The translations under genes and the position numbers were made by a program. Under the pieces are notes generated by a model. It saw nothing but the letters and a program-made list of their open reading frames with translations, ran no database searches and was not told the origin of the DNA. Shown piece by piece: positions 2,811 through 60,261 of a DNA stretch of 64,000 nucleotides. Numbering within the stretch: position 1 is the stretch's first letter; each line of letters begins with the position of its first letter. This DNA is from Leidyana gryllorum EB-2025a (lineage: Eukaryota; Protista; Apicomplexa): the NCBI GenBank assembly GCA_048772705.1, contig JBLWGC010000204.1, positions 111,884 through 175,883 of the forward strand, in the 5' to 3' direction.

Positions 2811-5800
2811 TCAATGACGGGTCTTCTTAGTCAACGCTTTGTCGGATTTCGTGGCATTTGTACGACCAATCGGTGGCCAGTACTTCGTACGGCTCGCCAA
2901 AGGGAACAGAGCGTCTTGGACTGAGTATGGCTTCTTCTGCCAATCAGTCTGGATGAAGTCTTCCACTGTGTGCGGTGCATTTCGCACAGGATTATTGTCC
3001 GCCGGCTGCCGGATAGGGCTGATTTGAACTCACGCCTCTCCTACTCACCCATTGTCCTGACGCGATCCGAGCAGATTCCTCGGCAATCTTGATTATCGCA
3101 TCGGCGAAGGCGTCAAGCGATTCCCTAGAATGCTTCGGCTGCACACGGCACGAATCGCACCAAACTTACTTGTTCTCGCACTCCGTCGGCTCTATCATCA
3201 AAGCTTTGCGAATGGGCCAGGACATGGTGGGCGCATGGTATCCATAGTCCATCAGGCGTTTCGCAATGTCCTCTTCGGTCACATCGGCCTGTGTGAGAGC
3301 TTTGAGATCTAAAATAAACTCGTGGCCGCAATAATCTTCCTTTCCGTGGCAGACGCTTAAGCCAGCAGTGGTTAGGCGGTGTTTGAGATAGTTGGCGTTC
3401 AAAATGGCTGCGCACAAACGTCAGGACTTGCGATTGTGATAGACTCACCAACTTGACTTGATCTTTGAAGCCCCTTCTTCCCCATCATGAGGAGGTATAC
3501 CCAAGGTATCGCGAGTAGACTGGCGCTACCCAATGGCGAGTGCGTGAAACTGACAATCTCATCTCCCGAGATGTTGCCGGTTTCCAGCCCCATTTGTTGT
3601 AGCAGTCGAGGATTTGATTGGAAGTGACGGTGGGAAGGTAGGAACTCGCGAAGTTTGGCGGTGACACACACTGGGCCGACGCCCGGCCCTCCTCCGCCAT
3701 GCGGGATGCCAAATGTCTTGTGGAGATTGAGATGGCAAGCATCAGCACCGATTTTGCGCGGGTTTGTCAGCCCCATTTGAGCATTCATGTTGGCGCCATC
3801 CACATAGACTAGGGCGCCGATTTGATGAACAAGGCGGGTAGCTCTGAGATGAATTACAGGAATGAGAGCAGTTGCGCTGGTTGTTGACTCACTCTATGAC
3901 TTCTTGCTCGAAGATCCCGTGCGTGGACGGATAAGTTACCATGAAGCATCCAACATCCGATCCGTGCTGGTCCAGGGCCTTGCGCAAATGGTCTAGATCT
4001 ATGTGACCATTCGGTTTGAGATTGATCTGCACCACCTCAAAGCCGGAGAGGGTCGCTGAAGCGTTGTTTGTGCCATGTGCAGAAGCTGGGATCAGACAGA
4101 TTTTCCGGTTGGCTTGTCCTGTGGCTTTGTGATACTCTCTGATTGCATACAAGCCGGCCACCTCGCCTGCGCTTCCAGCGTTGGGCTGCAGCGAGCAGTA
4201 GTCCAGGCCGGTTATTTGACAGAGGAAGGTCGCAAGCATGGATGCGATGAGCACTGTGCCCTTAGTCTGCCACACAGGCGCGAGAGGGTGGGTATTCTGG
4301 AGTGTTGTATTGGTGAAGGCTGCAGTGATGCCGGCCGATGGATTATGTTTCATTGTGCAGGAGCCCAAAGGGATCATGGAGTTTTGGAGGCCTATATCTT
4401 TGTTGCCGAGTTCGTTGACCCAGCGCAACATATCGGTATCGGATCTCCCGGTCTTCCAGCCGTCTTTCTCGAGGAAAGGGCTCGAGCGCACTACTGGAGG
4501 CGATCGGGGCAGCGGTACCGTGGCACAGCTGAAGAGGCTGAGTTCACGGGCCGCCTTATAGAGGGCATGCAGGACTTGTTTGTAGACATCTTCGTCGCAG
4601 AGTAGCTCGTCGACGTGGATGCGGCAGACTCCGCGGTGAATATCATAGGCGAAGTTCAGCTTGCTATCTTCAGCCCATTTCCGAATGACTCCGAGATCAC
4701 GTCGTCGAATTCCCACGACACCAAAATGGCGTCCATAACGGAGCCAGCTGTTCTCTCCTTCGACACTGAAGCCGAGCTCGCGTGCGGCTTCAGCCAGCTC
4801 CGAGGTTCTAGAGTACACTTTCCTCGCTAATTCTTTGATTGCGTCAGAGCCTTTGTATGCCACCCAAAACTGAGCCATTACAGCTGGCAGTGATTGCGCA
4901 GTACAGATATTAGAAGTCGCATTCTCTCGTCGGATATGTTGTTCCCGAGTTTGTAAGGCGAGACGGTATCCCTTGCGCCCATTGGCGTCTTCAGCTACGG
5001 CCACGAGCCTACCGGGCAGCTGCGTAGAGCGTGAGAGAGTTGCTTGCTATAAGGAAGTGTACCTGACGGACTAGCTCATTGGTTACAGCAAAGTAGGCAG
5101 CTGCGGGGCCTCCCGTTCCCATGGGAACACCAAATCTGCGGGGTGGGTGAATGTGTGAGAACGAGAGAATGCTGATCACCTTTGGCTGGAGCCGAGCACT
5201 ATGTCAGCTCCCTGGCGGCCTGGGGGCTCGAAGAGGACCAAGGCGAGGGGATCGGTGATTGCAATTACTTTGGCTTTGAAGTCATGGCATTGACTAGCTA
5301 AGCGGCTGACATTTGAGACGATTCTGCCAGCAACGTCTGGTGTTTGGTATAGCACCGCCACTACGTTGTCCATTCCAGGCAGTCCATCCAAGAGGTCAAA
5401 TTCGCGTACAGAGATATTGAGAAACTTGAGACGAGTTCGCAGTACATCAGTGATCATCGGGCATACACCTCGATCGACCAGGACGGATATTTTCCCATCT
5501 TCCAGATCGGATGTGCGTTTGGCCAAAAGAACTGCCTCAACGGCAGCTGACGCGACATCCAGTAGCCCGGCGTTTGCCACCGGAAGGCCTGTGAGTTCGG
5601 CAAAGATATTCTGAAAGTTGTACAACGCCTCGAGACGCCCTTGACTAATTTCAGCTTGGTAGGGGGTATACGCAGAGTACCAAGCCGGGTTAAGGAGAAC
5701 ATTGTTGACCAGCACTGCAGGAGTGTGTGTGTTGTAGGAGTGGGCTCCGAGGAAAGACCGCCAATTCCTCTCATTGAGACTGAGAACTTCTCCCAGAAGT

Positions 5801-6213
5801 TCCTGGCCTCTGCGTTCGCTCAGACCTTCCTCTGGCAGTCCTCGGCCCAGATCGTCTTCGGCTGGTACGATCGCACTACGGGCGTAGGGGATCACCTTGT
5901 CGGCCAGCTCATCCAAAGAAGTCATGCCCACGGCTTTCAACATTTCGGCTATCTCGCTGTCGCTGGGCCCCAGCATCCGGCTTACATACGACCCGTCACC
6001 GGCCGGAAGTCTGTCCCCCAATCGTCCATGATCTATACACACTGACCGATCGAGGAGAGTGCGCGCTTCCGGGACGTCGGTGGCCGGAGGCTGTGAGGTG
6101 GGTCTGTAGATGGCTTCAACGTCATTTGCGATTCCTAAACCCGTCGTCAGCAGTCGTCGATGGAGTCGCCAGGACAGCGACAGCTTGGAATGGGATCCTT
6201 GAACTGGCAACAT
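2811..6213 (-). CDS. GLDC: Glycine dehydrogenase (decarboxylating), glycine cleavage P-protein; multi-exon
   Basis: Contains YTPYQAEISQGRLE, QR|FGVPMG.GGP, LQTREQHIRRE.ATSNICTAQ, MIPLGSCTMK and the PLP-lysine motif HLNLHKTF..PHGGGGPG. The Arg/Ser/Leu-rich N-terminus resembles a mitochondrial presequence. Confidence 0.96.
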
Positions 6214-6252
6214 CGGCAGTCCCACGTGCGGAAATACTACCACTTTTTTGTG

Positions 6253-7004
6253 ATGCCTAGGGTCGGTGTTCTGGGTGGTAGTTTCAATCCCGTGACTTAC
6301 GGTCACCTTCTGCAGGCCTCAGAGCTGCTCAGCTTTGCGGTAACTTCTGATCCAGAAGTACCCTTTTTCGACTGTATATACCTGCTACCGTGTGGAGATG
6401 ATAGGTACTTTTCGAACACCAGTTGCGATCGGAACTATCTATCAGATATGACAAGAGTGTTACCATTCCGGCTGCTGAGCGATTGAAGATGCTCGAAGCG
6501 GCAGTCGATTGGTACAAATCGCAATATGGACAGCATTTGCAGCTGCAAGTGTGCGACTTGGAGATCCAAAATGGCAGCTATCTGCCGACAGCCGAGGTCC
6601 ATCGACAACTGACGACTCTGCAGCCCGACACAGAGTTTCATTTCGTCATCGGGGACGATCTGCTGTCTCGTTTTTCAACGTGGTAAAGGTGGAAACTTTG
6701 GCCCACACATCACATTCTCTCTCACAGGAAACAACCACAATACCTCTTGGACAGTGTGCCCTTTGTTGTCTTGGAACGAGATGGAGCCCCGAGGAGCACC
6801 TCCGGGGATACTCCGCTCCTCAGGAAACTGCTCCATGTTGCTGATGTTGCCGTTCGCCCCGTGACAGCAATGTCGACCAGCTCTACTGACATTCGTCACC
6901 GGGCGGCTACCTTTTGGAGCAAATCCAACGAGCCCAAGTTGACCGATCTCCAGGTATGCGAGAGGGCGATTCGAGCAACACACTTCCTTAATTTCAGACG
7001 CTGA
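6253..7004 (+). CDS. Nicotinate/nicotinamide mononucleotide adenylyltransferase (NadD/NMNAT family); short introns
   Basis: VGVLGGSFNPVTYGH (T/HxGH motif), ERLKML, FVIGDD and SSTDIR motifs. Confidence 0.88.
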
Positions 7005-8236: not shown

Positions 8237-9661
8237 ATGACAGGTTGTGAAAGTCCCCCGTACCAGTCGACGAGTACTCGGCTAAGTCTGAATCGTCTAT
8301 TGGCGAAAACCAAAAGCTGGGCTAGAAGACGAGATCGTTGTGAGGATGGTAAGCGGCCTCGACGGACCAGTCGATTTGACGCGTTTTGGCGATTGGGCCA
8401 GCACAGTATGTTGCTTGCACCTTGGATGTGTATTGTGGATGTGATGTCTTGTTAGGCGCCGATACAGCGGACGAGGACACCAGTAGTGGGTCACCTGGGA
8501 TCCAGCGGGCGGGATCTGCTGGTTTGAGTCCGTCCTGGGTGGGTGATCCACCCGAGTGTGAGGCCGAGATTGGGGCAAAACACGCTGTTTCAATGACTTG
8601 GGCATCAACCCATGACTCCTCGTCATCTGTGGGGAACTCGCCGTCATCTGTTCACGTGAATACAGTGCGGGATGCACAGATTTTGGACAATATGTTTAAG
8701 CTATTGGATGACAGTAACCCAGCTGTGCGCGAGAAGGCACTTAGTACGGTGTTCCATCTCGCCCAGTCGTCTCCGGCTGCTAGAGATAGTATTCTGGCTG
8801 CCGGTGGACTGCAGCCCATTCTGAACGAAATCCAACGAGAGGGTCCGGCTGACGCTCAGACCGCCCGGGCGCTGTTCCATTTATGCATCGGGGATCCGTT
8901 ACCACCTTTTAATCTGGTTGTACAGGCGTTGCCCAGCTTCCAACGTCTTCTGGTCAGCAGTGATGACGAAGAGGTCTTGGTGATCATCTGTTATGCTGTG
9001 GCTGAACTCACAACGCACAAAGATCCGCACGCATCAAACTATATCAATAAGATTATCCCCCCTCCGCTGCACACCCGTCTGATTTCATTGTTAGCTCACG
9101 AGTCAATTGATGTTCGATTCCGCACTCTCGTTTTGCTGCGGGCAATGGCCTCTGCAGATCGGATTCACGGAAGCAAAGGTGAGTGGAGACGGCTGTCGTC
9201 GTTCTGAGACTTGGGGGCTGACAGAGTCAGGCAGCTATTGCGCCGATTGGTTTCCGCATGACATCACCAACTATTTGCGTCGTGCTTTGAGAGCACCAGA
9301 GTTACAAGACGAAGTTTTAGAGGTCACTCAGGCCTTAATGGTTAATCATTTCGATAGATTACTACGATCTGAAGATTTAATGCGAAAGTACTTTGCTGTC
9401 GTTAGCTCCAGAATGGGATTTGAGGCTCGCGCGCTCTCGAGTCTGTGTTCGGTTATGCGTCACGCGACTCCGGATCAGGTGTGAGACTTTCGCCATACAC
9501 TTTTATGCTTTCTTCAGGTTCGGTTTCTGCGGGACGTTGGATGTGCGGATGTGGTGAAACAAGGAGTGGAGGACACGGTGACTATGGAACAGTGTCACAA
9601 GGAATTGGATAAATTGTACATTCAGCTAAAATCTACAGGTCGCAAGAATAGAGGAGGGTGA
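8237..9661 (+). CDS. Divergent importin-alpha-like ARM-repeat protein; introns ~8349-8455, ~9180-9230, ~9480-9517
   Basis: LLDDSNPAVREKAL..., SPAARDSILAAGGLQPIL and LPSFQRLLVSSDDEEVL..IC.A align by eye to importin-alpha ARM repeats. Confidence 0.7.
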
Positions 9662-18412: not shown

Positions 18413-21107
18413 ATGGGGTGGATTCGTCCCTATCAAATATGTCTACTGGCTTGCCTTTCGATGCCGCTCACTCGCGGGTCACCCTTGCGAAAACTGCAAG
18501 CCAAAGGCAATCAATTCTTGACACGATTGCTCAGCAACCACACCTTCGAGACAGGATATCGATCAGACAATCCGAACTCGTACCCTGCGCCACGTGGATT
18601 CCAGTATGCATCCTTAGGACGCGCAAACTTCCGGAGAGTGGCAAATGGCGAAGAATTTGACTACATCATTATCGGAGCTGGTGGCGCTGGCTGTCCTTTA
18701 GCCAGAACGCTGTCGGAAGCAGGCCACTCTGTGCTCTTGTTAGAGCGGGGCAAGTTTCGTGAGGAGCACAGTCTTACTTGGACATTAAATGGGACAGGTA
18801 GGTGGAGGGACGTGTGCTCTGGTCCGTGAGATTCCATTCGCTTCTGCCAGGCCAAAGCTTCAATGACAACGCCATCTCCCAGCCCGTAGTCACAACTGAA
18901 GGCGTGATCAGTCGCATCGGCAACGCCTTAGGCGGTGGAACTGCTGTTAACTTCGGTTTCTTCATTGAGGAAACAGCGGAATATGTGCAATATCTTCGAA
19001 AACACTACAAGGTGTCCTGGTCGGATCAAGAATGGAGGGAAGCCGAGTATTGGCTGCGCGACCGAGTGGCTCATCCCACGAGGCAACGAGAGCCGTATGC
19101 AGAGGCCATGAAGAATTATCTGATCGACGAAACACCAACTCACTTGCACATTGGGGCATCGCCCAGGATGTATCCAGGAGCTGTATGGCAAGGGTACACT
19201 CTTTTCGACCCGGAATCAGGCTATCGATATGCGGCCGACACACTTCTGGGAGACATCGAAAAGGACTTTCCGGGCTCGCTGACGGTGTCAGTACAGACCT
19301 CAGCTCTGGAGATATCATTCGAAGATGCGCCTGACCAGCAGAGGAGGGCTCGCTGTGTCTTAATTCGGGATACGGTTGTCGATGATGTCGCACCGGTGAT
19401 CAGTCAAAAAGGTGGCGGAGTCGGAATTATCAATAGCTACTCAAACTTCATGCAGGTAGGTCGGAGTTGATGTGACTGACAATAGTACACCTTTCTTCAA
19501 TAGTGGCTACGATGGTATCCGCGAGTGTCCCGGCTGGCCCAGAAAGTTTTGCCTCCACCAGGCGGAGAGAGTCCCGTTCAACCACTACGAACAGTGTGTC
19601 TGAACGACTCACCTCATAGTCAAATAATCTCGAGTGCTGGTGCTTTGCTGACCCCCTGGCTGCTGTACAAATCCGGTATCGGGCCGAAGGAAGAAGTCAA
19701 GAAGTTGAGACACACCGTAATTGCAGAAGTTCCAAGTCTGGGACGGAATCTCACGGACCGGATCTATGTCCCCGTGGTATATTTCATGAAACCCGACGAG
19801 AAAGATCCCACCAAGTTGTTCGAGCCAACCGTCGTAGAACACATGACCCTCCAAGTCCGGGGAGATTCCAAGAAATGTCGCGACTTTAAGATCGGTGACC
19901 AAAGCACGGAATGCTCCTTCGTGGGATTTGAAGAGATTAGTGGCGGCCAAATGGCTGAAGGCGCCGGAATGTCATCTCGGTTCTTTTTTCCGCCCCCAAT
20001 GCGGTCAACACTGGTGGTCGACATCGCCATGGCGGTGCTCACAGAGTGCAGCGCTAAGCCCACGGAGGGGTTGAGTATCCTTGGCATTGCTGTGTGCCCC
20101 TTGATCCAGCCGATCCTCAACTGCTTCCGGAGAGCAGCAGCCCACATCTATGTACTGCCTGAGCCGCGCAGCAAAGGTTCGATCAGCGTTGGAGGAATGG
20201 ATGGACAGTCAATGGTGGTTCACGGCGGTTACCTCAGCCATCCGCTGGATGTGGCTGATGGTGTGCGAGGTCTCCATTGGATGTTGGACAGTATGCGCCG
20301 AACTAAGCGTTTCGACAAAGTATTGGAAAGGATCGACGAAGTTGGAACGGCACGAGACCTGTTCGACAACTCCTGCCCTTTGATCATGCGGACTAAGCTG
20401 GCAGATCTTTTGTACACCGTAGGAAATGTCTGGACGGAGTTCGTCAGTCATGAGGAAGTCAAGCGTGCGGAACAAGGGCTGGATGAGACGACTGGTGTGA
20501 ATCTGGAAGAAGTAGTTCGGGAAATTCGGGATCGGGTCAGTCTTCATCGCGATCGGAGTGTATTGACGGAAGGTGTATTACCGAATCAATCAGTTGATGA
20601 ATTACCACCTGAAACGGATGTGAAGCTGCTGGAGAGCATTGGCCGCATGCCGCTGGCCGAGTTGGCATCCTCAGTGGAGTTCAATCAAACGAAGACGTCG
20701 GAGATGTTCACAAAGTTGACGAGCCAACGATATCTGTCGTTCCCTCCCATTCTACCGGGTGAGTGATTGTCTTTCATCGCCTTATTAAAACTTTACTATT
20801 GTCAGACCCCGATAATGCTGTTGAAGTGCAAACGTTTTTGCAACGGCAGATGACCTCAATGTGGCACTGGCATGGGTGAGTTTTGTTGACTTTGTTTTTG
20901 TCGACGCGCGGTTCATTGTGCAGGAGCGCTGCGATGGGTTATGCAGTAGATGAGCAATTCCGCGTTGCACCCGACAAAATTTCGGGTCTGCGAATCGTGG
21001 ATGCTTCAGTATTACCTAAATTGCCAAGAATGAATCCCGAAGCAGTCGTGATGTTACTCGGCCGACTGGCTGGGAAGCGTATATTAAAAGAGCGCGACGA
21101 GTTATGA
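18413..21107 (+). CDS. Secreted GMC oxidoreductase, copy 1; multi-exon
   Basis: Signal peptide, FAD motif DYIIIGAGGAGC, LGGGTAVN, SAGALLTP.LL..SGIGP, and LRIVDASVLP...NP. Confidence 0.92.
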
Positions 21108-21208
21108 TTTGTTATAGATTTGTTGTGAATTTGTGCTAAATGATGATTGTGGGTATCATGTTTGATTGGATGTGTATCACAGAGAATGACTGAGAGTTGA
21201 TCACTGAG

Positions 21209-23668
21209 ATGCGTGGATGCTTACTGGGGCTCTTGGTACTTGATGTAGCTGTCGAGGGATATGACCGTTGTGGAAGCGACATATGTCCTGACATCTTACC
21301 ATATCAGCGTCCCATTGGGTATGTGAACCCGAAGTTGGAGGCGATTACCCCGATTCCTCTCAAGTTGGCAAGTCAAAAAGTGTATGACTACATTGTTATC
21401 GGAGGAGGAGGTGGTGGTTGTCCATTTGCTCGCACACTAGCAGATGCGGGAGAGCGTGTGTTGGTCTTGGAAAGGGGTGGTTTGCGTCGTGATCATATAC
21501 TGGCGCACGACATATATGGGAGTGGCATGGTTATCGGTGACGACCGTGTTAGTCAGGCAGTGGTAACTCCGAGTGGAGTGCGTACTCACCTGGCTAACGT
21601 GTTGGGAGGTGGTACAGCGACTGGGATGGCGATTGCCATTGAGGAGGATGAGGAGTACTGGGACGTGCTGTCGAAGCTGAGCAACGAGCCGATCAACAAG
21701 ACTGGTATCCTTGAAGCGTTTGACTGGTTGCGAAGTCGTACGTCTGAGCCTATGACGATGGTGGAACCTTACAGCAGTGCTTATCGCGAGGGGCTGAGGG
21801 AACAAGGGTTCTCGAACTTTCACGGCGCGAGTCCGCAAATTCAGAAGGACGGAACATGGAATGCTCACAGTTTGTTCAACCACAGTGAGGGATATTTCCG
21901 GAATAGTGCCGATGTGTTGTTGGGGACACCTGCGGAGCCCCAACCTCCTACCCTGGATGTGGCAGTGAATTCGACGGCGTTGAAGATATTGTTTGACGAG
22001 TTACAGAGTCCTCTGGGCCCTCGAGCTCGATGTGTCTCGGTACGACCGGCTGCTCCAGCAGATTCGGCGACATTGGACGGTCGTTTGGCTCGAGCTCAGA
22101 TATCGTGGTGGAGCTTGGCGAGCAAAGATCGGCCGTGGGTGAAGTATGCGACGGGAAACTCTCGGGCGCGTGGAGCTATCGGATCGCTGGGTACTGGGAA
22201 AGCTTTGGAAAGTCATGCCAAGGAGATGGTGATCTGTGCACAGAAGGAGATAGTGTTGAGTGCGGGCGCGGTGATGACTCCAGTATTGCTGGCTCGCAGT
22301 GGCATTGGAAGTGCTCAACAAATCTCCGAGCTGAATGTGCCGATGGTGTTGGAGAATCCGAGGGTGGGGAAGAATTTGATCGATCGTGGGCTGTTGCCGG
22401 TTGCCTACTTTAGGGACGATCCCGCTAATGTTGGGTCTGAGTTACCAGCCCAAGTGTGTGGGATTGTGGGTATGGCCCCGGTGGGTCCCGATTGTGACAA
22501 GTTCCGAATGGCTAAGAGAACTCAGCAGTGTTCGATGACGGGAGCTGAGGAGATCACTGGTGGTCGCATATTGGAGGGTTTTATCTACGCAACTCGGATA
22601 TTGTTTCCTCCTGATCTTCGGAATAGTCTGCTGATGGATCAAGTGATAATGGCTGTGAGTTACTGCAGTGATCGTCCGAGGGATACTCCCTTATGTCGGT
22701 TTTTGGAGAAGGGGAGCGCTTGTTGGCGACAGCTGAGCGCTACTTGGTACTTTGTGAATGAGCCGAAGAGCCGAGGAAGTGTGAACGTCTTGAGCAACGG
22801 CAACATTATCGTGGATCCTCGCTACTACAGTCATCCTCAAGATTTGGCGGATGGGAAGAGAGGTATCGGGAATCTGTTGAGGATTGCGAGGAGCGGATCT
22901 TTCATGAACGTCATGCAGAGTCCCTCCAAGATGGGTTGCCCGTGGATGATTAGCGGGATTCTGACGACGTTTACACAAGCCCTTAACCAATGGTCGCGTC
23001 GGGTGATCACCGAATCGGATACCAATTTGATGATGAACACCTTGACTCACCCCGAAGGGGCCCCATTTGCTGTCAAATCGGTTAAGAAGGATTCAGCGGC
23101 GCGGATTTCGAGTGTTGAAACCCGAATCCCGTTGGATCAGCAGTGGAGACGGCACGTTGAGGAGCAGAAAGAGTTGGATCGACTGCAGTACGCGCTTGAG
23201 CATCCAGAGAGTGAAGAGATGAAGAAGCTGTGGCCATTTGGAGACGAGATGACACTGGAGAGGATAGCAGCAGCTGCTGTGAATGATAGTTCGCGCCACC
23301 ACGAGGACGCTGAGGCCGCCACGTCAGCTTTGAGTCTGAATCGTTTCAGTCGGTATGTCCCACCGCCAGCTTTCGTTGTGGGGTCAAACCAACACGTCGC
23401 AACATACCCGGCTCTGTTGCCCGATCCTGATGATGACGAGGCAGTAGAGCTGTACATCAATGCCATGATGCAGAGTATGTGGCATATGGCCGGGACAGCC
23501 GCATTGGGTGATGTGGTTGACAAGCGATTCAGAGTGAAAGGTGTTCGTCGTCTGGGAGTAGTAGACGCATCAGTGTTGACTCAGATCAGCAGAATGAATC
23601 CAACTCAGACAGTTATGGCATTAGGCAGATATGCCGCGCAATTGAGATTGAACGCGACATCCGTTTGA
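21209..23668 (+). CDS. Secreted GMC oxidoreductase, copy 2; intronless
   Basis: Signal peptide, DYIVIGGGGGGC, LSAGAVMTP, catalytic His in SMWHMAG, and VVDASVL...NP. Confidence 0.93.
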   Translation: MRGCLLGLLVLDVAVEGYDRCGSDICPDILPYQRPIGYVNPKLEAITPIPLKLASQKVYDYIVIGGGGGGCPFARTLADAGERVLVLERGGLRRDHILAHDIYGSGMVIGDDRVSQAVVTPSGVRTHLANVLGGGTATGMAIAIEEDEEYWDVLSKLSNEPINKTGILEAFDWLRSRTSEPMTMVEPYSSAYREGLREQGFSNFHGASPQIQKDGTWNAHSLFNHSEGYFRNSADVLLGTPAEPQPPTLDVAVNSTALKILFDELQSPLGPRARCVSVRPAAPADSATLDGRLARAQISWWSLASKDRPWVKYATGNSRARGAIGSLGTGKALESHAKEMVICAQKEIVLSAGAVMTPVLLARSGIGSAQQISELNVPMVLENPRVGKNLIDRGLLPVAYFRDDPANVGSELPAQVCGIVGMAPVGPDCDKFRMAKRTQQCSMTGAEEITGGRILEGFIYATRILFPPDLRNSLLMDQVIMAVSYCSDRPRDTPLCRFLEKGSACWRQLSATWYFVNEPKSRGSVNVLSNGNIIVDPRYYSHPQDLADGKRGIGNLLRIARSGSFMNVMQSPSKMGCPWMISGILTTFTQALNQWSRRVITESDTNLMMNTLTHPEGAPFAVKSVKKDSAARISSVETRIPLDQQWRRHVEEQKELDRLQYALEHPESEEMKKLWPFGDEMTLERIAAAAVNDSSRHHEDAEAATSALSLNRFSRYVPPPAFVVGSNQHVATYPALLPDPDDDEAVELYINAMMQSMWHMAGTAALGDVVDKRFRVKGVRRLGVVDASVLTQISRMNPTQTVMALGRYAAQLRLNATSV

Positions 23669-23696
23669 GGGAAGAAGGTCTCACGATTTTTGTTCA

Positions 23697-26117
23697 ATGT
23701 ACAAACTATTCTTGTGTTGCTATGTGCTGTTGGACTTATTACATGCCGAACCGCGAGTACTCGAGCGCCCACTCCAACACGATGCTCAGGGGGTGTTGCA
23801 GGGGCTTTATGATTACATAATCGTTGGTGGAGGAGGGTCAGGGTGCGTTGTGGCTCGCACGCTGGCTGATGAAGGTTTCTCTGTCCTGCTGCTGGAACGG
23901 GGCGACTTCCCGGGCCCGGCGAGCAGTCACCCGTCTCTCATCCGCGAAGCAATGTTGGATCCTCACCATATGCAGCCAGTGATTACGTCAGGAGGAGTTC
24001 GATCGGGAGTTGGGTCGGCTCTCGGGGGGGGAACGGCAGTCAATCTGGGTATCTGGATCGAAGAAGACGAGTCCTACTTTGCTTCTGTTGGACAGCTGAC
24101 TGGCTATGATGAGTTATTCGCGAATCAAACCGAGGTGGAGGAAGCAAAGGCCTGGGCACGGGATCGATTCGCGCATCCACCCTCGAATCCACAAACTATA
24201 AACCCCTCAATAGCCACTTACATGGAATATGCCAAGGGCATTTTGGGCGAGACCTTTGGACCGCACATTGGTCCGAGCCCGCGAGTACTGCCAAACCGGA
24301 CATGGAGCTCAATGCAATTGTTTGAAAGCGAAACCCGAGAGCGACGGTCGACGGCGTCTCTGATTAACGATGAAACTGCGCCCCCCAATCTACATGTCAT
24401 GTTGAACAGTAAAGCTCTGAGTATCCAGACGTGTCGGAATTGCCCGAAACCGCGCGCTGAATGTGTTGTGTTCCGAAGGTCGTTGTTGAAAGACTTCCGA
24501 CCCATTGGCGAGCTAAAATTGCCGCAAGGGAGCGCAGCTGCTTTTGAGACGCGGGCAATTCGAGATTTGTTAGAGAGATCGCATCGAAGCGATATACTCA
24601 ATAAGGTAGTCGACGAAGACGAGACATATGAGTATCCTTTCCGAGTATGTCTGGATATAGAAAGCAATCCCGACGCCGAAATCATTCTGTCCGCGGGGGC
24701 TATCCATACACCCCTCCTGTTGATGCACAGTGGCATTGGCCCCCGCCAAGAGATCCAAAAGTTCGGAACAATGCCCGTGGTGGTGGATAACCAGGCTATC
24801 GGCAAAGGACTGCAAGACCGAATCTTCATACCTTTAGTCTTCTACTTGAGAAATGAATTGGAGCCAGAGGATACCTACATGTGTCTAATTACCGGGATGA
24901 AACAGGGACCCGCTGGCTCAGTGCCCTTTGAGGAACTCATAGGGGGATCCCTGCTGCAAGGAACGCTGGTCGCCAGTCGGCTATTCTGGCCTCCTGACAG
25001 AAGGCACGGACTGTCTGCCGAAATTGCCTCCAGCTTTCTCCACCACTGCGCGCTCAATCAATACGATGAAGACGACGACAACCACAGTAGACCCAATAAA
25101 AGCAATGCGTCTTCATTCAACCGAGCGTGGTGGGCATTGCGACCCGGGGAAAATGCCACGAACCCAAGACGTGTTTGTGACCTCATTTCCACCGCTAAGC
25201 CGTGCTTCGAACACAGTGTGGCCTGGTGGTCTTTTGTGTCTGAGGTTCGTGCCGCGGGATCAATCACCATTGATCCTGACACACTCGAGCCGATCATTAA
25301 CCCGCGATATCTCGAAGATCCGGCAGATTTCGAGATGCTGACCAACAATGTAGCTGAAATGCTCACCATTATGAGAAGAAACCACCACTTCTTGGACAAA
25401 GTTCTGAAAACATCCCAAAGCGACACCTGCCCCATGAGGGTTTACGACACCGACATGGGCTTCCTCATTAGTTTAGTAGATCTGCTACAGCGACACGACT
25501 ATCAAGACCTTATGGCCAGAGGTGTTGCTCCTCTGGCGGCGGACGCCGTCTTGATCAAATCCGATATGCACCCCGTCGACCGCAATCCCTCCTACCTGCC
25601 CTACGCGTCTTTCCCCCAATTCCTTCCAGGTAATCAACACGAACCGGCCGCCGGCCCAAAGGAGTCACAACGGAAAGCTACTCGGCAGCTGCCCGGCGAC
25701 TCTGCCCCACAATGCGGCCAGCACGTCTGCGTACCTGTCGTCGTGTGTCTCCTTGTCTTCCACTTGCCGTGCAACTCTACCCTGCTGCTGCCCCCATTAA
25801 TACCATCGTTTGCAGATCCAACCAATACCGAGGCCCTTCGAGATTTTGTACGCAAGTCTGGAACTTCGATGTGGCATCTGGTGGGCAGTGCGCAACTTGG
25901 GAGTGCCCTCGATGCGGACTTTAAAGTCCGTGGGATTGATAATCTGGCGGTTATTGACGCCTCGGCACTCCCGGTTCTGACGCGAATGAACCCTACCGCC
26001 ACCTTGTTAGCGGTGTCGCGGCTTGTTGCTTTGCGAAAAGCTGTCAAACACAAGTCCAACAAACTCTACAAACATTCAATCCAGCATCATGGTTGCAGGG
26101 GATTCTACGATGGGTAA
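23697..26117 (+). CDS. Secreted GMC oxidoreductase, copy 3; probable in-frame intron 25630-25815
   Basis: DYIIVGGGGSGC, LSAGAIHTP, SMWHLVG and VIDASALP...NP. The insert has GT..AG ends at the same position as an intron in copy 1. Confidence 0.92.
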   Translation: MYKLFLCCYVLLDLLHAEPRVLERPLQHDAQGVLQGLYDYIIVGGGGSGCVVARTLADEGFSVLLLERGDFPGPASSHPSLIREAMLDPHHMQPVITSGGVRSGVGSALGGGTAVNLGIWIEEDESYFASVGQLTGYDELFANQTEVEEAKAWARDRFAHPPSNPQTINPSIATYMEYAKGILGETFGPHIGPSPRVLPNRTWSSMQLFESETRERRSTASLINDETAPPNLHVMLNSKALSIQTCRNCPKPRAECVVFRRSLLKDFRPIGELKLPQGSAAAFETRAIRDLLERSHRSDILNKVVDEDETYEYPFRVCLDIESNPDAEIILSAGAIHTPLLLMHSGIGPRQEIQKFGTMPVVVDNQAIGKGLQDRIFIPLVFYLRNELEPEDTYMCLITGMKQGPAGSVPFEELIGGSLLQGTLVASRLFWPPDRRHGLSAEIASSFLHHCALNQYDEDDDNHSRPNKSNASSFNRAWWALRPGENATNPRRVCDLISTAKPCFEHSVAWWSFVSEVRAAGSITIDPDTLEPIINPRYLEDPADFEMLTNNVAEMLTIMRRNHHFLDKVLKTSQSDTCPMRVYDTDMGFLISLVDLLQRHDYQDLMARGVAPLAADAVLIKSDMHPVDRNPSYLPYASFPQFLPGNQHEPAAGPKESQRKATRQLPGDSAPQCGQHVCVPVVVCLLVFHLPCNSTLLLPPLIPSFADPTNTEALRDFVRKSGTSMWHLVGSAQLGSALDADFKVRGIDNLAVIDASALPVLTRMNPTATLLAVSRLVALRKAVKHKSNKLYKHSIQHHGCRGFYDG

Positions 26118-30480: not shown

Positions 30481-31062
30481 GCCCCCAGCCCGCGATGTCA
30501 AGCGATACCTCTCTCGGTGAATGTGTCTTTGTACAGTGGGCACTGGGTCCACAAGCGATCATCCAAAACAATCTCATAAGAGACGGGGGGGCAAAAACCT
30601 CTTTCTGCTGTGCACTAGGGGGGCGATGCCCTGCCCACTATCTCTTTTGGAGTTTACTCAAATCACACTGCAGTCTCTAACACTGAGTGTTGTTGTCTTC
30701 ACGATCTCGACATTGATGCAGAGGACTCAATTAGGAGTACGAGATGATCAGTGGCGGGATCGTCATTGTGGCTAGCGAGCAACTCGTCTTTTACATACTC
30801 GTCGGGCGGGGGAGTAGTTTTGCTGCGTCCACCCCCTATGGTGATTCCGGAGGAACTCCGTTGGTTGGTCACCAACGCCCTGACGAGCTCTCGGCTCCCC
30901 TCCTTAGCGCAGTCGACCTCGCAAGAGAAAGGCGATCAAACTCTCTCTCTTTGGGGAGGGGAGGTGGCCGGTCACCGATGACGTGACGGTCGAAGGGCTT
31001 TGGTTGCTTGTGTGCGCTCCTTACTGAGTGTCGTGTGGAGATTTCGTCTTTCCCTTTCACTT

Positions 31063-33748
31063 TCACCCGATACTGGCCATGTCTCGTGGGGTGGGGGCAG
31101 TGGTGGTGGTGCCTCCCGGGCCCGTTGCTGGTTGAGGTTTCTGCTTTGAGGCGGGATGGTTAGCCAATTCCTGGGGAACGATATTATTGGTGGAGACCAA
31201 TAAATTCTTGAGGTCGTAGAACAGTCCATTGTCATCTTCCGTGACGAAACTGATCGCGAGACCTTTCTTTCCGGCGCGCCCAGTACGGCCTGATGGGAAA
31301 TTGTGGTTTGGTGAGGACGAGAATAAATAGTCAACTTACCAATCCTATGTGTGTAGCCCTCAATCTCCTTTGGCATATCGTAGTTCAAGACGAGCTGCAC
31401 GTCTTCCACATCGATACCACGGCCAGCGACGTCAGTGGCGACCAGAATGTCCATCTCGCCTTTCTTAAACTGGTCCAAGGAGGCCTCACGTATGTCCTGG
31501 GCTTTACCGCCGTGAAGTGCGACTGCTCGGAACCCTTCTCTTGAGAGAGTCCGTGCAATAACGTCCGCATTCTTCTTTTGATTAACGAATATGATGACCG
31601 GTGGAGGCGCTTCGGAGAGCACCTCGACGAGACGTTGTTTCTTGCGCGCCTCGGAGACAAACTCAAGTCGTTGCTCAATGGACTGCTTGCCCTGGCCAGG
31701 ATTGCCGATCGAGATGACTGACGGTTGTCGAAGATAGCGACGAGCGAGTCTCTCGACAGATGCGGGCATTGTAGCGGAAAACATTTGGGTTATACGATAG
31801 CGTCGGTATCCAGCCTTGGCCGCCAGTTCTTCTTCCAACACTCTATCGGCTTCATCACTCTTCATATTGCTGCTCGGGATTTGGTCCAATATCCAGTTGA
31901 CAATCTCCTCAAACCCAAGGTCAATCATTCGATCAGCCTCATCGAGAACGACATAGTTGCACTGGATGAGCACAGTGTATGCCTTTTCGAGGCAGTCTCT
32001 GATACGTCCAGGCGTGCCAATGACAATCTCCACTCCGCGACGGAGCTCAAAAGCCTGGACCTCTGCGCTGCGACCTCCAACGATGGCGACGGACCTAATC
32101 TCCAGTCGGCCACTAAACTTCTCAGTCTCATCCCGAATCTGTACCGCCAGTTCACGACTCGGAGCCAGAACGAGACCATATGGTCCCGACTGGGCTGTCT
32201 CGTCATTCAACCGTGGGAGACGGGCAACGTACGATAACATTGGTAGCATGAAAGCCGCGGTTTTACCGGAACCAGTCTCGGCAATGCCAATGAGATCACG
32301 CATTTCCATTGCGATGGGCATCGCCTGCATCTGAATAGGCGTCGGTGTCTCATAGCCCGCTTCCTTGATGGCGTTCAGAATCTCGGGGTGAAGACCCGAC
32401 TCGGACCATTGACGCACGGGATTAGGGACCCGTCCTCCTTTGACAAAGATAGAAAAGTCTTCTCTGAAGATACGCCAGTCGCGGTCGGTCATCTCTGCAG
32501 TGGTCTTCTTCGACCAGTGTCCGTCACCGAATTCATCATCGGAAAGATCCGCTTGAGCTGCTGCCATTTCATTGATAATCCTTTGATCACCAGTCAGATT
32601 GAGCACCGATAACGCTTCAACCAAATTCTCTCCCTCCAAACCCTCGGGATTGGCTGCCAGTTCCTCAAGTTTTTCACGTCTCTTCCGAGCTAATTGGTCG
32701 TAGAACATATTACGTCGTCGTTGATCGCGCACGTCTACTCCCGCGATGAAGCCTCTGCCAAACAGGAGCTGAGGCTCGTGACGCCGATGATACAGTGGGT
32801 TCAGATCTCCCTTTGTGGTGTCCTCACTATCATCCCAATCGAATTGGAATATATTACGGAACTTCTCAGACGGCTTCTGGACCTTTTTCTTCTCTTTTCG
32901 AGTCCCCAAGTATTGCTCACGGATTTGTTCCTTCTCCTTCTCTTCCTGTAACTTCAACCTCTCGACTTCAGTGAGCCCAGCGTATTCATCATCTTCACTA
33001 TTTCTTCGTTTGCGTCTTCCGTTGCCATTCTCTTTACTGTGCCTCCCCTCAGCCTCTTCTGTCTCGCGCCTCTTGCGTTCCTCCTCTTTCCGACGACGCT
33101 CCGTCTCGGCCTCTTGTTGCCGTCTCGCCCGTTCCTCGGCCGTTGCTCGGGCCTCCCGAGTGAAAAACTCGGTCCGCTTCTGAGCGAGTTGCTCCTCCTG
33201 CTGCTTCTGCGTCAATGCCGCTTGTGCGGCCTCCTGCGCCTTCAGTGCCTCTCTCTGGGCTTTGGTCAAAAACCGAACTCCGCCACCAACGACGACTGGA
33301 GGCGGTACTGCGGCTGCTGGGGGAGTGATGCCGCTGGCAGTCTGCTGAAAGGAGAAATACGCCATATGTCTCACAGCCGCCTCTCATTGCTCACCTTGAG
33401 CACTGTTGGTCTTGTGTCAACCTGACGTGGCGGTGACGTCTCGGAATTGGGCGGGGTGGGCTCTGAGACGGGCGGAAGGGCACCGTCCATGGGCGAGGGG
33501 GGCTCATAGCGCCGTTTACGAGATGGTTGCGCATAGTCGCGCCGACGTCTGTCGTCTGGTGACCCTCCTCGTCTGCGAGACGGACGGCGTGGCGAGGGTT
33601 GTCTTCTTCTGGGTGGTGGGGGCGACCTGCGGCGTCTTTTCACTTCGTGGTGGTATTCTGACTCGTTGTCAGAAGCGTCTCGGTAGCGGCGACGAGGTCT
33701 ACGGTCCTCTTCTCCGCCGGAGGATGACAACTCTCCGTCCTCGGCCAT
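31063..33748 (-). CDS. DDX23: DEAD-box helicase PRP28/DDX23; introns near 33350-33397 and 31292-31339
   Basis: RS-rich N-terminus, [38 protein letters not shown] and HRIG|RTGRAG. Confidence 0.96.
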
Positions 33749-44140: not shown

Positions 44141-44206
44141 AGTCACATCTGATTGTGCCGAGCACACGTGCGTGTGTGCAAGCCGGTGTCTCCGTGTGAG
44201 CCGGCT
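44141..44206 (-). promoter_or_regulatory. Conserved upstream element, shared with 60193-60261
   Basis: gtgccRagcacaSgtgcgtgtKtg...ccggtgtctccgtgtKag.ccgg lies a similar distance 5' of both homologous ATGs. Confidence 0.55.
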
Positions 44207-45433
44207 CCAATCCACCAGGTGAAATAGTACCAGCACAACAATAACAGATGAAGTCACAAAAGTGGGGTTCGTCATCATAGGGCTTTATAACCGCAAGAGT
44301 TCCGGTCGCACTGTGGTTTAACGTATCAACCACTCTTCTTCATCAGCGTGTGGATGCTGAGACAACGACAGTTGTGCTGTCCTCCTAGTGTCACAAGTAG
44401 AAGCAGAATCAGTATCTGATGGGAGCGAGACAGCGCACAGCAAATGACATTATCTCCCTCGATATGTAAGGACGGGGGGCCGGATAGTCTTTATTGCTCC
44501 GCGGGTTCCATCTGGGCTGTACTTGGCTATGGATGACCAGTTCTAATCACCACCCATTTCGACGATGGAAGAAGGCGGCAAAGGAAGTCGTGCAGAGAAT
44601 CTCGGGTTTTGAACTTTGGCTCTGAATCTGCTGGAGTGCCCAGGACGGATACTATCGGGATATCCCGTTCGTGGGGTGCATCCTGAATGCTTCCATTGGA
44701 TTACGAAGGAGTTCTCTCTGATCGTGAATTCAGTTCGTCGCTCCGGCCGCCTCGATGGCACAGCCGCATCCATTTGTAACGAAACAGTCTCAGCACCTAC
44801 TGGGGTGAGTACGGGAAAGCGAAACGGCTCACAAACGCTTTCAAGGCAGAGCTAGAAGCATTTCGGTGGCAAGCGTCTCCCATCAAAGTGTTGAAGTAAT
44901 ATATGGGATGAATCACTCTCCAAGCGAGAAGCCAATTGGGTGTGGAGCTTGCAATTGGACAGTCACCACTCGGCTATTCCTCACTCGCAAACAGCTGTTT
45001 GCCACAATCTTGATGATAGAGATCACTCCCAGTTGGTGGGTGGGATCTGTGCTGAGTTTGGGCCGACATAGATCAAGTATAATTCTGGGAAGGATCATCC
45101 ACGAGTGAACCCCTCATGGGAATGGAGAATTCTGGAAGCTCACTGTCCCAGAAAGTGGACCAGACGAGACCCTCACGCCGGGATCCTATTCGTCTCGGGG
45201 ACTCGTAACATTTGGACCGTGAGATCAAGTGTTGTGGAAAGACTTTATAATTACTGAGTATTGTATTCAATCAGTTCACTCGCGAGCTCGCCGGCCTTTG
45301 TGGTGGAGACACGACGATTGGCCCACACAATTTCCAAAGTCGCTGATAGTGGCACCCCAAACTCATCTAATGAATCGCTGCGGAGAGGCATTGGTTAGTT
45401 GGGATTCCCGTTCTCGGTACGACGCACTGATTC

Positions 45434-48301: not shown

Positions 48302-48639
48302 CGTTCCAAAATGGTCCACCGATCACGAGATACTTGGCTTGCTCACTTGGAGTTTTGCGTCGAGAGGACCACTTAGCATTCATTTTGTAGCCCAACAGAG
48401 CTGAGCCGGTAACATTGCTCGGAGGAGTGTGAGCCGAGCAGAATTTTGGTTGAAGAGATCAGTCCAGTGACTAAGCCTCTATCAACATAACCGACAACAA
48501 ATTGGAGTGATATAAAACCCAGAGCCTGTAACTCCGGTTCCTTTTATCACAAGGATAGAACTTCGAAATTTACAACTGATCAGAGCTCAGAGGCTCGAGA
48601 GTGTGATTTAACTCCGAATTTGGGCTCTACTACTCTCCA

Positions 48640-48796
48640 TGTGTGCGGCACACAGGACGCATTGGGCGGTACCTGACTGAAATTACTCAATTTCTCGAGC
48701 CCAATAGCTCGGATCACTTGTTTCAAATATAAGTTCTTTCTTCAGTGATATGTAGAATGTTGGCATTGCCGACAACGTGTATCACAGGACTTTCTC
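48640..48796 (+). ncRNA. Structured repeat element, copy A (putative ncRNA or ssDNA element)
   Basis: TGTGTG-CGG-CACACA palindrome, gagc/gctc hairpin, gtgatat/gtatcac stem and tgttggc/gccgaca hairpin. Confidence 0.5.
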
Positions 48797-49020
48797 AAGC
48801 TGAGTCCGAGATGGCAGCCGGTCACCCGCGCCTCTCGAACCGGTGCTGTCGAGCTAACACAAATCCTCGACTACGCGCAACAGCAGCCTCAAAAGGCGAC
48901 ACGCGATAAACTGAAAGATAGATTCAGAGATAGATTTCGGTACCAAACATTGGATCAGTATGTTGACGAGTTGGGAGCCGCACGGCCACCACCAACACAG
49001 TGTCGGTCACACAATCTTGA

Positions 49021-49170
49021 TGTGTGCCGCACACAAAGTATACCCCCCTATTTTTGGCCAAAGAAAATCAACTCCTCGAGCCTACTAGCTCGGATCACTT
49101 GTTTTAAATAAGTTCTTTTTTCAGTGATATGTTAAAGTTGGCATCGCCAACAATTATCACCTTACTTTCT
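49021..49170 (+). ncRNA. Structured repeat element, copy B
   Basis: Same architecture: gtgata/tatcac and gttggc/gccaac. Confidence 0.5.
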
Positions 49171-50679
49171 CATATTGCTGAACGGCGGATGTGCTGAGGG
49201 ACTACCTCTTCCATCTGTTGCAAAGTGCTCGCGAGCTCACACTCATCCTCGATGACGCGCCACAGCAGCCACAATGGCGACATAACGTACCATCGACACG
49301 CATGATTGCTCCGAACTCCCGGCAAGTCTGAGTATGCACTCCGTCTGGAGGGTATCCGAACGGTCCTGGTAAGCCCCTTTTGCGCTGCTCATGAACCCGA
49401 CAGATCGCCCTCTGGTCGAGCTCAGCTCGGCTCGGCCCACCCATTTTGATCGGCTCGGTACACAGCCGAGATGGAGACGGTGTCTCCCGCATGGATTCTA
49501 CTGGGGGAAAGTTAAGGGACCACTTCGCGGACCGGCATGTTGACAAAGGGCCAAGTCTTGACAGTTCACCCGCTACAACTTTCAACAATGGTGGAAAATG
49601 CATGCTCTTGATGTGCATCGGCCCTATCAAAAGTCCATATGGGCTCAGAGTGGACCGACTCAGGCCCGAGGCGCGCCCTCCAGGAGGGTTTCTAACAGAG
49701 AGAATTGACAGGCGTAATGGCTACGTCTCTTTGTCGGACAGGGTGACGCAGCGCAGACCTGGCCGGTCGAATCTGGCGGACGAAGCAATTGAGGAGTGGA
49801 AGCGACACAGCACACAGTATTTGTTATCGTCCAGTGGTCTTGGCGGCCCTGGGGAGCTTAGTGGATGTCCGACGCTCGATTAAGTTTACGCCGAGACACC
49901 TCGAGCAATGCCCCGTTCGGGCTCAGAACGTCCTATCAATTGTGAAGGACTGTAAAGCACAGCGAGAGAGAGCTGCGCGCCCGATAGAAGCCCATAGACT
50001 GAATCTCATCGCGAGGCTCATGTCTCCGTCTCCTGTTGGAAGCGACCAGCTTCAAGAAACGAGTGACAGTGTTGGGAGCCTCTCGACAACGTGATATCGT
50101 CTCGGAATCTAGATTCGGAGGACCAGATTCGTGGACTAAGAAGGTTTTTACACATCTGAAAGCGCGACGTACCTAACCTGGTACCACGGGTGACACGATG
50201 ACACCAGCACATTTCGAACCCCACTCTGGTGCAATTAGATCGAGTCCTCAGCAGCCAACTTCGTCTGACTCGAGATGGATGTTAGAGGAGGTCTGACAGC
50301 CTCCGTAGCCACCGTCTTTTAACATGAGTCTGTTCTCACGGGCTCCCGCGATCGCACAAAGACTCGCACAACACGACCCCAGAGATTTTGATACTTCAGC
50401 AATGGGGCGCAGACCACTACACAGGGTGAGTAGTATGTGATCTAGGAGCGACTGTTCAGGATTGCACTTGGTGGAAGGTCGGACGCGGCTCGAGAAACAC
50501 ACCGATGCGTTTCAAAAAGCTAGTCACCGGTGCAAGTCTGGCGCAGTATGGCGGTAGGGTAGAGACGTGAGAGGAGCAGCGGAAAAGTGTGTAGCGGAGT
50601 ACCTCGAGACGCAGTTTGGTGGGAAGAACACACGTGTGTGTTCGCCGATACCCGTGACAGAAGCTGCAATGTCCCTCTC

Positions 50680-50836
50680 TGTGTGCCGCACACAAAGTAT
50701 ACCTCCTTATTTTTCGCCTAAGAAAATCAACTCCTCGAGCCTACTAGCTCGGATCACTTGTATTAAATATAAGTTCTTTTTTCAGTGATATGAAGAACGT
50801 TGGCATTGCCAACGACTGATATCGCAATATTTTCTT
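50680..50836 (+). ncRNA. Structured repeat element, copy C
   Basis: Same architecture: aagaaaat/attttctt closing stem, gttctt/aagaac, gtgatat/atatcgc and cgttggc/gccaacg. Confidence 0.5.
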
Positions 50837-51469
50837 TATGCTTGCGGTTGGTGGTAAGAAGTACGTGCTTCTCCGCCAACCAGTGTGCGGTCGAACTCAC
50901 ACGTTACTTCGATATGCGCTACGAGCGGCTTTTCCGAGCGACAATCGAAAAGGACTAAATCGAGTGGCGATCTGATCTCTGGGGAAGTGCACGAGATTTT
51001 CGCAGGTATAGTGGTTAAGATTGCGTCTTTCTGTGAAATTCTTTCTCCGCAGATTGTGAGAGTGTCGCTACGAAGGCATCGGTATCAAGGTATGTACATT
51101 GTGGAGACCTATTCGCGTGGCAAGAGAGAACGGCCCCTGAGTGAGCTTTTTATCAGCAGACGCTGAGATCATAGCGTCGCATCAGACATCCAGGGCTGGG
51201 GCTGGTCGCGGAGACGGTAAGTGTTTTCAGCGAAGCGGTGGCATTTTTGAAGACTAGCGGGGGTGAGGAGTGAACGAGCCGACTGTTCTGGAGGAATTAG
51301 TCTGTGGAGCCTCGCACCGCCTGAGGATTAGTCGGTTGCTCGCCACCTAGAGACTGAGTGTAGTTAACGAAGGAGTGGGGACAAAAAAGGGGAGGAGAGT
51401 GCGACCCTGGCAGAGCTCGACGACAGACCGTGGTGATGGATCAGGTTTGTGAAGTGCCAGGCGGCCAGG

Positions 51470-51619
51470 TGTGTGCGGCACACAGCTCATCTGCCCAGAA
51501 TCGTATGTTCAAATTCACCTTCTCGAGCTCGACGCTCAGATTAGTTGTATTTTGATAAGTTCTTTCTCTGTAACATAGAGAACTGCGAGCAATGCTCGCA
51601 GATTTGTTACTGATATTTG
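51470..51619 (+). ncRNA. Structured repeat element, copy D (divergent, with compensatory changes)
   Basis: caaat/atttg, agttct/agaact, gtaaca/tgttac and ctgcgagc/gctcgcag. Confidence 0.5.
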
Positions 51620-51917
51620 TGTGCCTAGTTTCCTACGAGATGGTGATATTCTTCATCTTCGGGGGAGCTTTGTGCCCCCAAGCTGACACCTCACTTGGCG
51701 GGTGCGCACAGGTCTTCTCCAGACGACAAGAATACAGCTTAGTGTGCCGACTGCTCAAAAAGGGGGGATGGGTCTCACGTTTCACAGGGGTCACGTGAGC
51801 GTCGAGGAGGACTGAGGGTCCATTTAGTGAACCGAAGGTGAGGCAGATCGGCACACAGTGGAAGGCTTTTTTTTGGAGTGGTAATACCTGTATCTGGTTT
51901 TTGACTTTGGGGTCGGA

Positions 51918-59918: not shown

Positions 59919-60173
59919 TTATAGTCTTCGGCTATCTTCAGGTGAGAGATCGGTAAAGCTCTCGATGGTTTGAGGTTCAACTGAAGGACGGTGCCGACTG
60001 CATTGGACAGCCCGGCAGAAGGTCATCGAAGGAGCGACTGCGATCATGGCTCGGTGAACCGGTATTAGTTGTACCGGTTGATTATCGGCCGGATCTGCTG
60101 GGAGGTCAACAGAAGGGCTTTGATCTTCTTCTGGATCGGTTCCTGCCTTGCTCCTGAGTCCATCTCTAGCCAT
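59919..60173 (-). pseudogene. MARDGLRS... short ORF or remnant
   Basis: Homologous to the 43940-44126 remnant. Confidence 0.5.
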
Positions 60174-60192
60174 CCTGCAGTTCAATCCAAGA

Positions 60193-60261
60193 AGTCATTC
60201 TAATCAGTGCCAAGCACAGGTGCGTGTTTGTCGACCCGGTGTCTCCGTGTTAGCCCGGTCG
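60193..60261 (-). promoter_or_regulatory. Conserved upstream element, shared with 44141-44206
   Basis: See the partner copy. Confidence 0.55.

Follow-up and report, generated by a model that had tools for sequence, protein, structure and literature searches.

The repeated elements in the window (the whole stretch of 64,000 nucleotides analysed here, from contig JBLWGC010000204.1 of Leidyana gryllorum) are, as judged from their sequences and with near certainty, divergent U2 snRNA genes (Rfam RF00004) of this terrestrial eugregarine. An earlier note on this DNA had described four copies of an element of about 150 nt, each starting with an exact palindrome, at 48640, 49021, 50680 and 51470, and had recognised no known RNA family in it. 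The four copies and their coordinates are confirmed, but the total is five, as searches with Rfam and with our own model found one more copy, E, on the minus strand at 48604-48404, lying head-to-head with copy A and also visible in the window as the inverted repeats I1-I3. The copies are about 200 nt long rather than 150 nt, extending over two further stem-loops and a 3′ box, and the Rfam search that the note itself had proposed returned U2, with each stem fitting the U2 order and spacing. The five genes are listed below, each with the hexamer that stands in place of the canonical GUAGUA.

48404..48604, minus strand: U2 snRNA gene E; hexamer GUAAAU; Rfam U2 23.3 bits, below the cut-off; own model; elements mapped
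48687..48886, plus strand: U2 snRNA gene A; hexamer GUUUCA, variable segment 48719-48730, Sm-like site 48788-48796; Rfam U2 30.5 bits, E 0.005
49068..49269, plus strand: U2 snRNA gene B; hexamer GUUUUA (49100-49109), stem IIa weakened, Sm-like site 49163-49171; Rfam U2 21.1 bits
50729..50927, plus strand: U2 snRNA gene C; hexamer GUAUUA (50759-50770), Sm site 50827-50836; Rfam U2 50.9 bits, E 6.9e-8
51513..51716, plus strand: U2 snRNA gene D; hexamer GUAUUU (51546-51556), Sm-like site 51613-51621; element map

Copy C is the only one of the five to exceed the Rfam gathering score (50.9 versus 46 bits), and the Rfam matches span the whole U2 model. Copies A, B and E are counted as U2 on account of their homology to copies that do pass (C shares one clade with A and B) together with their U2 features, and copy D, which Rfam did not report at E ≤ 10, through its U2 features and its 84% identity over about 58 nt (E 2.9e-7) to the best-scoring U2 gene of the genome. 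All on one contig, the five copies are 45-72% identical to each other, and D and E represent old separate types with deep splits from the A/B/C clade. Like U2 in general, they follow the order and spacing of stem I, the U6-pairing segments of helices Ia, Ib and II, stems IIa, IIb and IIc, an Sm-like site and stems III and IV, all of which are kept in every copy; unlike canonical U2, they lack GUAGUA and the UGCA of loop IV, carry a longer UGU-GUUCU segment, and occur as strongly diverged paralogues. No additional U2 relics were found between the copies of the window, nor any convincing homology in the spacers.

Genome-wide, 15 full U2 genes were found, mostly 45-70% identical, seven of which exceed the gathering score (best 76.5 bits), together with one degraded copy of the L005/L006 type (L080:1501-1709) whose 5′ half is unrecognisable. 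Two segments of the window, 44153-44333 and 60090-60255, match about 300 nt directly after the end of an open reading frame in L080 at 68-72% identity and possibly belong to an LTR-like or other dispersed repeat; elsewhere in the window, 19504-26114 holds tandem GMC oxidoreductase genes (Pfam). Other snRNA matches in the genome number at least 42 for U1, 5 for U4, at least 14 for U5 and 8 for U6, and the U1, U5 and U4 genes (L035-L064) are likewise expanded and diverged.

Fold of the copies and pairing with U6

[quoted passage not shown] The irregularities reported for them are also there, with two of seven pairs of S1 broken in B and S2 altered on both sides in D; in addition, stem IIa is shifted in register in D and E. 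Over the 15 genes, six of the seven stem IIa pairs show double changes, and the pairing as observed was reached by 0 of 500 shuffles, a control that ignores relatedness. For stem IIc, the own partner of a gene scores 5.79 versus 4.46 for the partners of other genes, matched by 0 of 20000 permutations, with relatedness again ignored; among the five copies of the window alone, four of which share one loop, this own-partner advantage is absent. The earlier claim that selection acts on the fold of a plus-strand transcript is upheld. The H-type pseudoknot claimed along with it falls away, since stems IIa and IIc of U2 are mutually exclusive conformations (PMC4712673), and from the letters we read the interleaving of S1 and S2 as this switch.

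The segments that pair with U6 are the best kept. The sequence GCU-NN-GAUY, which would form helices Ib and Ia with U6, is present in all five copies and all 15 genes; among the 14 distinct genes, GCU of helix Ib is 100% invariant and GAUY of helix Ia 96%, and the 3′ domain is only 53% conserved. For helix II, the duplexes predicted between the 5′ ends of the U2 genes of the genome and its own U6 range from -7.0 to -11.4 kcal/mol, and those of the five window copies from -8.0 to -11.4 kcal/mol. A U-rich Sm site lies between stems II and III, clear in C, D and E and relaxed in A and B, the relaxed form resembling the Sm sites of the U1 and U4 genes of this genome. Sm sites are single-stranded in snRNPs. 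A closing stem had also been claimed, in which A-rich sequence located at the 5′ end or ahead of it pairs with the U-rich Sm site; because it exists in only two copies and its partner is the Sm site, we regard it as incidental.

Stems III and IV are predicted in all five copies, with CAC kept in loop IV and UGCA lost throughout, and the folding z-score of E is weak (-1.4). Folding predictions give a stable branchpoint-interacting stem-loop to A, B, C, L003 and L011 and to no other gene, but canonical U2 does not receive one either, which makes this test uninformative.

Branch-recognition segment and introns

The hexamer GUAGUA, which is retained in nearly all eukaryotes, ciliates included (PMC13685798), occurs in none of the 15 U2 genes found in the assembly. 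The search pattern was one that a canonical gene would have matched, and such a gene would have come first in the Rfam ranking; a canonical U2 could, however, be missing from the assembly. What is left of the branch segment in each gene is UGU(A), the remainder being A/U-rich and variable in length, and the segment from UGU to GUUCU measures 17-19 nt in the window copies versus 15 in canonical U2. Eight hexamers were found, namely GUUUCA (A), GUUUUA (B), GUAUUA (C), GUAUUU (D and five others), GUAAAU (E), GUAAUA, GUAAUU and GUAAAA. Those of A and B are reduced to GU: the third base is lost too, and there is no A to pair, as is normal, with the U lying two positions ahead of the branch A. In all copies read, the U1 5′ end, U5 loop I and the ACAGAGA and AGC of U6 are canonical.

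The absence of GUAGUA is no bar to U2 membership, since accepted U2 RNAs without it exist (PMC4950102). In Leishmania major, as in the gregarine, the hexamer is replaced by an A/U-rich stretch (UUAUAA in Leishmania) and the Sm site is off consensus. However, Leishmania trans-splices and transcribes its U2 by Pol III from tRNA boxes (PMC4950102), whereas the gregarine splices ordinary GT-AG introns in cis, and its U2 has a complete 3′ domain, is present in many diverged copies and is preceded by the palindrome. Ciliates, which are alveolates too and have variable intron branch points, keep GUAGUA strictly (PMC13685798), but the gregarine genome does not. Scanning of metagenomes with the gregarine-type U2 pattern gave no matches, and a looser pattern returned only chance bacterial matches and the U2 of other eukaryotes, altered by single bases in surroundings that were canonical throughout. 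A literature search returned nothing on gregarine snRNAs.

The introns that such U2 RNAs would read were taken from a self-trained gene finder run on 207 kb, with spliced genes searched exon by exon; the set is small and mostly predicted, and its donors were filtered for consensus likeness, which makes the donor pattern partly one of construction. It comprises 35 plausible GT-AG introns, three of them backed by homology and 28 measuring 35-58 nt. CTAAC occurs in none of these 35 introns and CTRAC in 3 versus 2.1 expected, the level of chance, and YTNAY is weakly raised (21 versus 16.6 expected, p 0.075). With the nine tests corrected for, the introns are fitted no better than shuffles by canonical U2 or by any of the variants (best raw p 0.018); taking the best of all variants for each intron puts the branch helix score a little higher than in shuffles (p 0.037). 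The motif ATATY, one of many tried, is present in 7 of the 35 versus 2.4 expected (raw p 0.007).

The genome encodes SF1. The window itself carries a Prp28/DDX23 splicing helicase gene (30975-33383, minus strand), whose best match is in Blabericola migrator and which is 65% identical to that of Gregarina niphandrodes; its homology-confirmed 50-nt intron (31339-31290) is without CTAAC. No U2 was found at the Prp28 locus of G. niphandrodes, and the neighbouring gene has no homologue for a synteny route. Another spliced gene of the window encodes a glycine cleavage P-protein (3892-6318, minus strand), with introns of 43-49 nt.

Upstream palindrome and 3′ box-like motif

The palindrome matches exactly at four places in the window, and eight matches are found with up to three mismatches versus 1.45 expected. 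Together with its spacer, it lies outside and upstream of the U2 homology.

48640..48654, no strand assigned: palindrome common to E and A, 40 nt to the CTCG of E and 39 nt to that of A
49021..49035, no strand assigned: palindrome upstream of B
50680..50694, no strand assigned: palindrome upstream of C
51470..51484, no strand assigned: palindrome upstream of D

The spacers to the conserved CTCG are 39, 39, 39 and 37 nt long, as had been described. The suggestion that the palindrome is a fixed-distance promoter or protein-binding site also agrees with its behaviour over the genome, where it lies 35-41 nt upstream of the CTCG anchor in 13 of the 15 U2 genes, a form of it starting 49-54 nt before the anchor in these 13. 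As an exact 13-mer it has 17 matches genome-wide, 11 of which lie just upstream of U2 genes and cover 12 genes, and a control pattern has none; none of the 17 coincides with a listed position of U1, U4, U5 or U6. The single copy midway in the head-to-head E/A pair, at nearly equal distances from the two anchors, makes the palindrome a probable promoter site, and this one copy probably serves E and A both ways as a bidirectional promoter element. Its orientation varies between genes, which fits the expectation for a dimeric factor. ApiAP2 factors are known to recognise CACACA-type motifs and to be able to form dimers (PMC6631176); such a factor on the palindrome is offered as a lead only.

At the other end of the genes, a GRCGACA-like motif follows stem IV by a few bases in 13 of the 15 U2 genes. 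It resembles a 3′ box by position and may act as one.

48386..48392, minus strand: 3′ box-like motif after E, GGCTACA, a variant of GRCGACA
48895..48901, plus strand: 3′ box-like motif after A, GGCGACA
49276..49282, plus strand: 3′ box-like motif after B, GGCGACA
50937..50943, plus strand: 3′ box-like motif after C, AGCGACA
51722..51728, plus strand: 3′ box-like motif after D, GACGACA

A scan for sigma-70 promoters and terminators gave matches at chance level only. Several further observations concern the palindrome and other upstream motifs. A second head-to-head U2 pair (L003:1188-1696) has two palindromes rather than one in common. The two best Rfam-scoring U2 genes (L001:1501-1693 and L002:1501-1694) are the sole genes without the palindrome, and both keep the UGCA of loop IV. 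Four of the 17 exact matches (L020, L021, L028 and L032, around position 1501) lie inside one dispersed repeat, which at L028 adjoins a fragment like large-subunit rRNA and tRNA genes. A GGRGAC-like motif is found upstream of many U1 genes, and GGGAC upstream of several U2 and U4 genes.

Readings of the U2 diversification

Based on these findings, we propose that the window probably holds five old, diverged U2 genes, most or all of them functional, in a genome where the branch site is probably chosen mainly by proteins and position and the branch-recognition segment is relaxed. Each gene would be transcribed from a promoter that includes the palindrome, the shared one driving E and A bidirectionally, and the transcript would end near the 3′ box, bind Sm proteins, pair with U6 via helices Ia, Ib and II, and toggle between stems IIa and IIc. 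As the introns are short and without a branch consensus, the branch A would be picked mainly by proteins, SF1 being available, and by how far it lies from the 3′ splice site. The U2-intron helix kept would then be no more than a short one, leaving the distal half of the hexamer free to drift, with the structure staying under selection. Some copies could be decaying, since only C passes Rfam, stem IIa is weak in B, the hexamer is reduced in A and B, and the UGCA of loop IV is lost.

It is possible, if unlikely, that the genes are U2 but that their branch segment and paralogues diversified in escaping a U2-targeting, Utopia-like retrotransposon that inserts right after the hexamer. Such an element appears to exist outside the window, on C211 (locus L001, C211:2652-8672), where an intact U2 gene (8480-8672, minus strand) is followed by a 1795-aa frame containing a reverse transcriptase domain (4322-5077; RVT_1, 107.9 bits). 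Behind this frame lies a U2 fragment (2652-2694) whose start corresponds to human nt 39, a BLAST boundary good to a base or two. This is the arrangement of Utopia non-LTR retrotransposons, whose junction is nt 39 of U2 and for which, in oomycetes, intact U2 genes upstream are known (PMC4640811); Apicomplexa are unmentioned there. The likeness of the C211 locus to a Utopia insertion is drawn from the reverse transcriptase and the junction, and the variable segment of the U2 genes lies immediately 5′ of this junction. However, the U2 type beside the C211 element is also without GUAGUA, which means that its loss gave no protection; moreover, in Utopia hosts the insertion site stays highly conserved (PMC4640811), the expansion and divergence extend to U1, U4 and U5, and a single such locus was seen. 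Escape and relaxed constraint are compatible readings, as escape requires relaxed constraint first. The 15.5-Mb apicomplexan assembly has at least 150 reverse transcriptase matches.

Rather unlikely, too, is a specialisation of the paralogues, wherein each U2 variant reads its own class of branch sites and the palindrome-bearing class is stage-specific, possibly via an ApiAP2 dimer. The eight different hexamers, the deep splits between A/B/C, D and E, the restriction of palindrome-free genes to the two best Rfam scorers, the binding and dimerising properties of ApiAP2 factors, and the slight excess of the best-of-all-variants score are all in line with it. Against this, no single variant fits the introns after the nine-test correction, with eight A/U-rich variants to choose from, nearly every intron finds one that fits, and the changes look like A/U drift with small indels. 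We give a similarly low probability to a combined scheme, in which non-interchangeable U2 paralogues serve intron classes or life stages under a palindromic switch, their diversification pushed by a retrotransposon inserting at the same spot.

That most window copies are U2 pseudogenes or non-spliceosomal U2-derived RNAs, with one or two other genes doing the splicing, is very unlikely. The low Rfam scores of A, B, D and E, the broken stem IIa pairs of B, the altered loop IV and the weak z-score of E would agree with decay, but neutral decay to 45-72% identity would have erased what is kept, namely U6-pairing segments, stems IIa/IIb/IIc, Sm-like site, promoter spacing and 3′ box, with compensatory changes. 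Finally, the idea of an undescribed element, whether a pseudoknotted RNA or ssDNA, or of a minus-strand protein-gene relic is practically excluded, since the interleaved complementarities and covariation, real as they are, all map on U2 stems, the copies are complementary to the U6 of this genome, the Rfam match and the element map refute an undescribed element, and stops in all minus-strand frames of every copy, in agreement with the earlier caveat that no copy keeps the frame, rule out the relic, whose protein-like reading comes from stem II in reverse complement.

In conclusion, the finding would be worthless as a new RNA family; it is a known family in an unusual form, unusual only in how far its copies have diverged and in the missing GUAGUA. 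A cis-splicing apicomplexan in which no canonical copy was found would offer a natural series for how much U2-intron pairing splicing needs, to which this locus contributes five variants on 3.3 kb, two of them reduced to GU. The shared palindrome, in turn, gives gregarines a concrete candidate snRNA promoter element.
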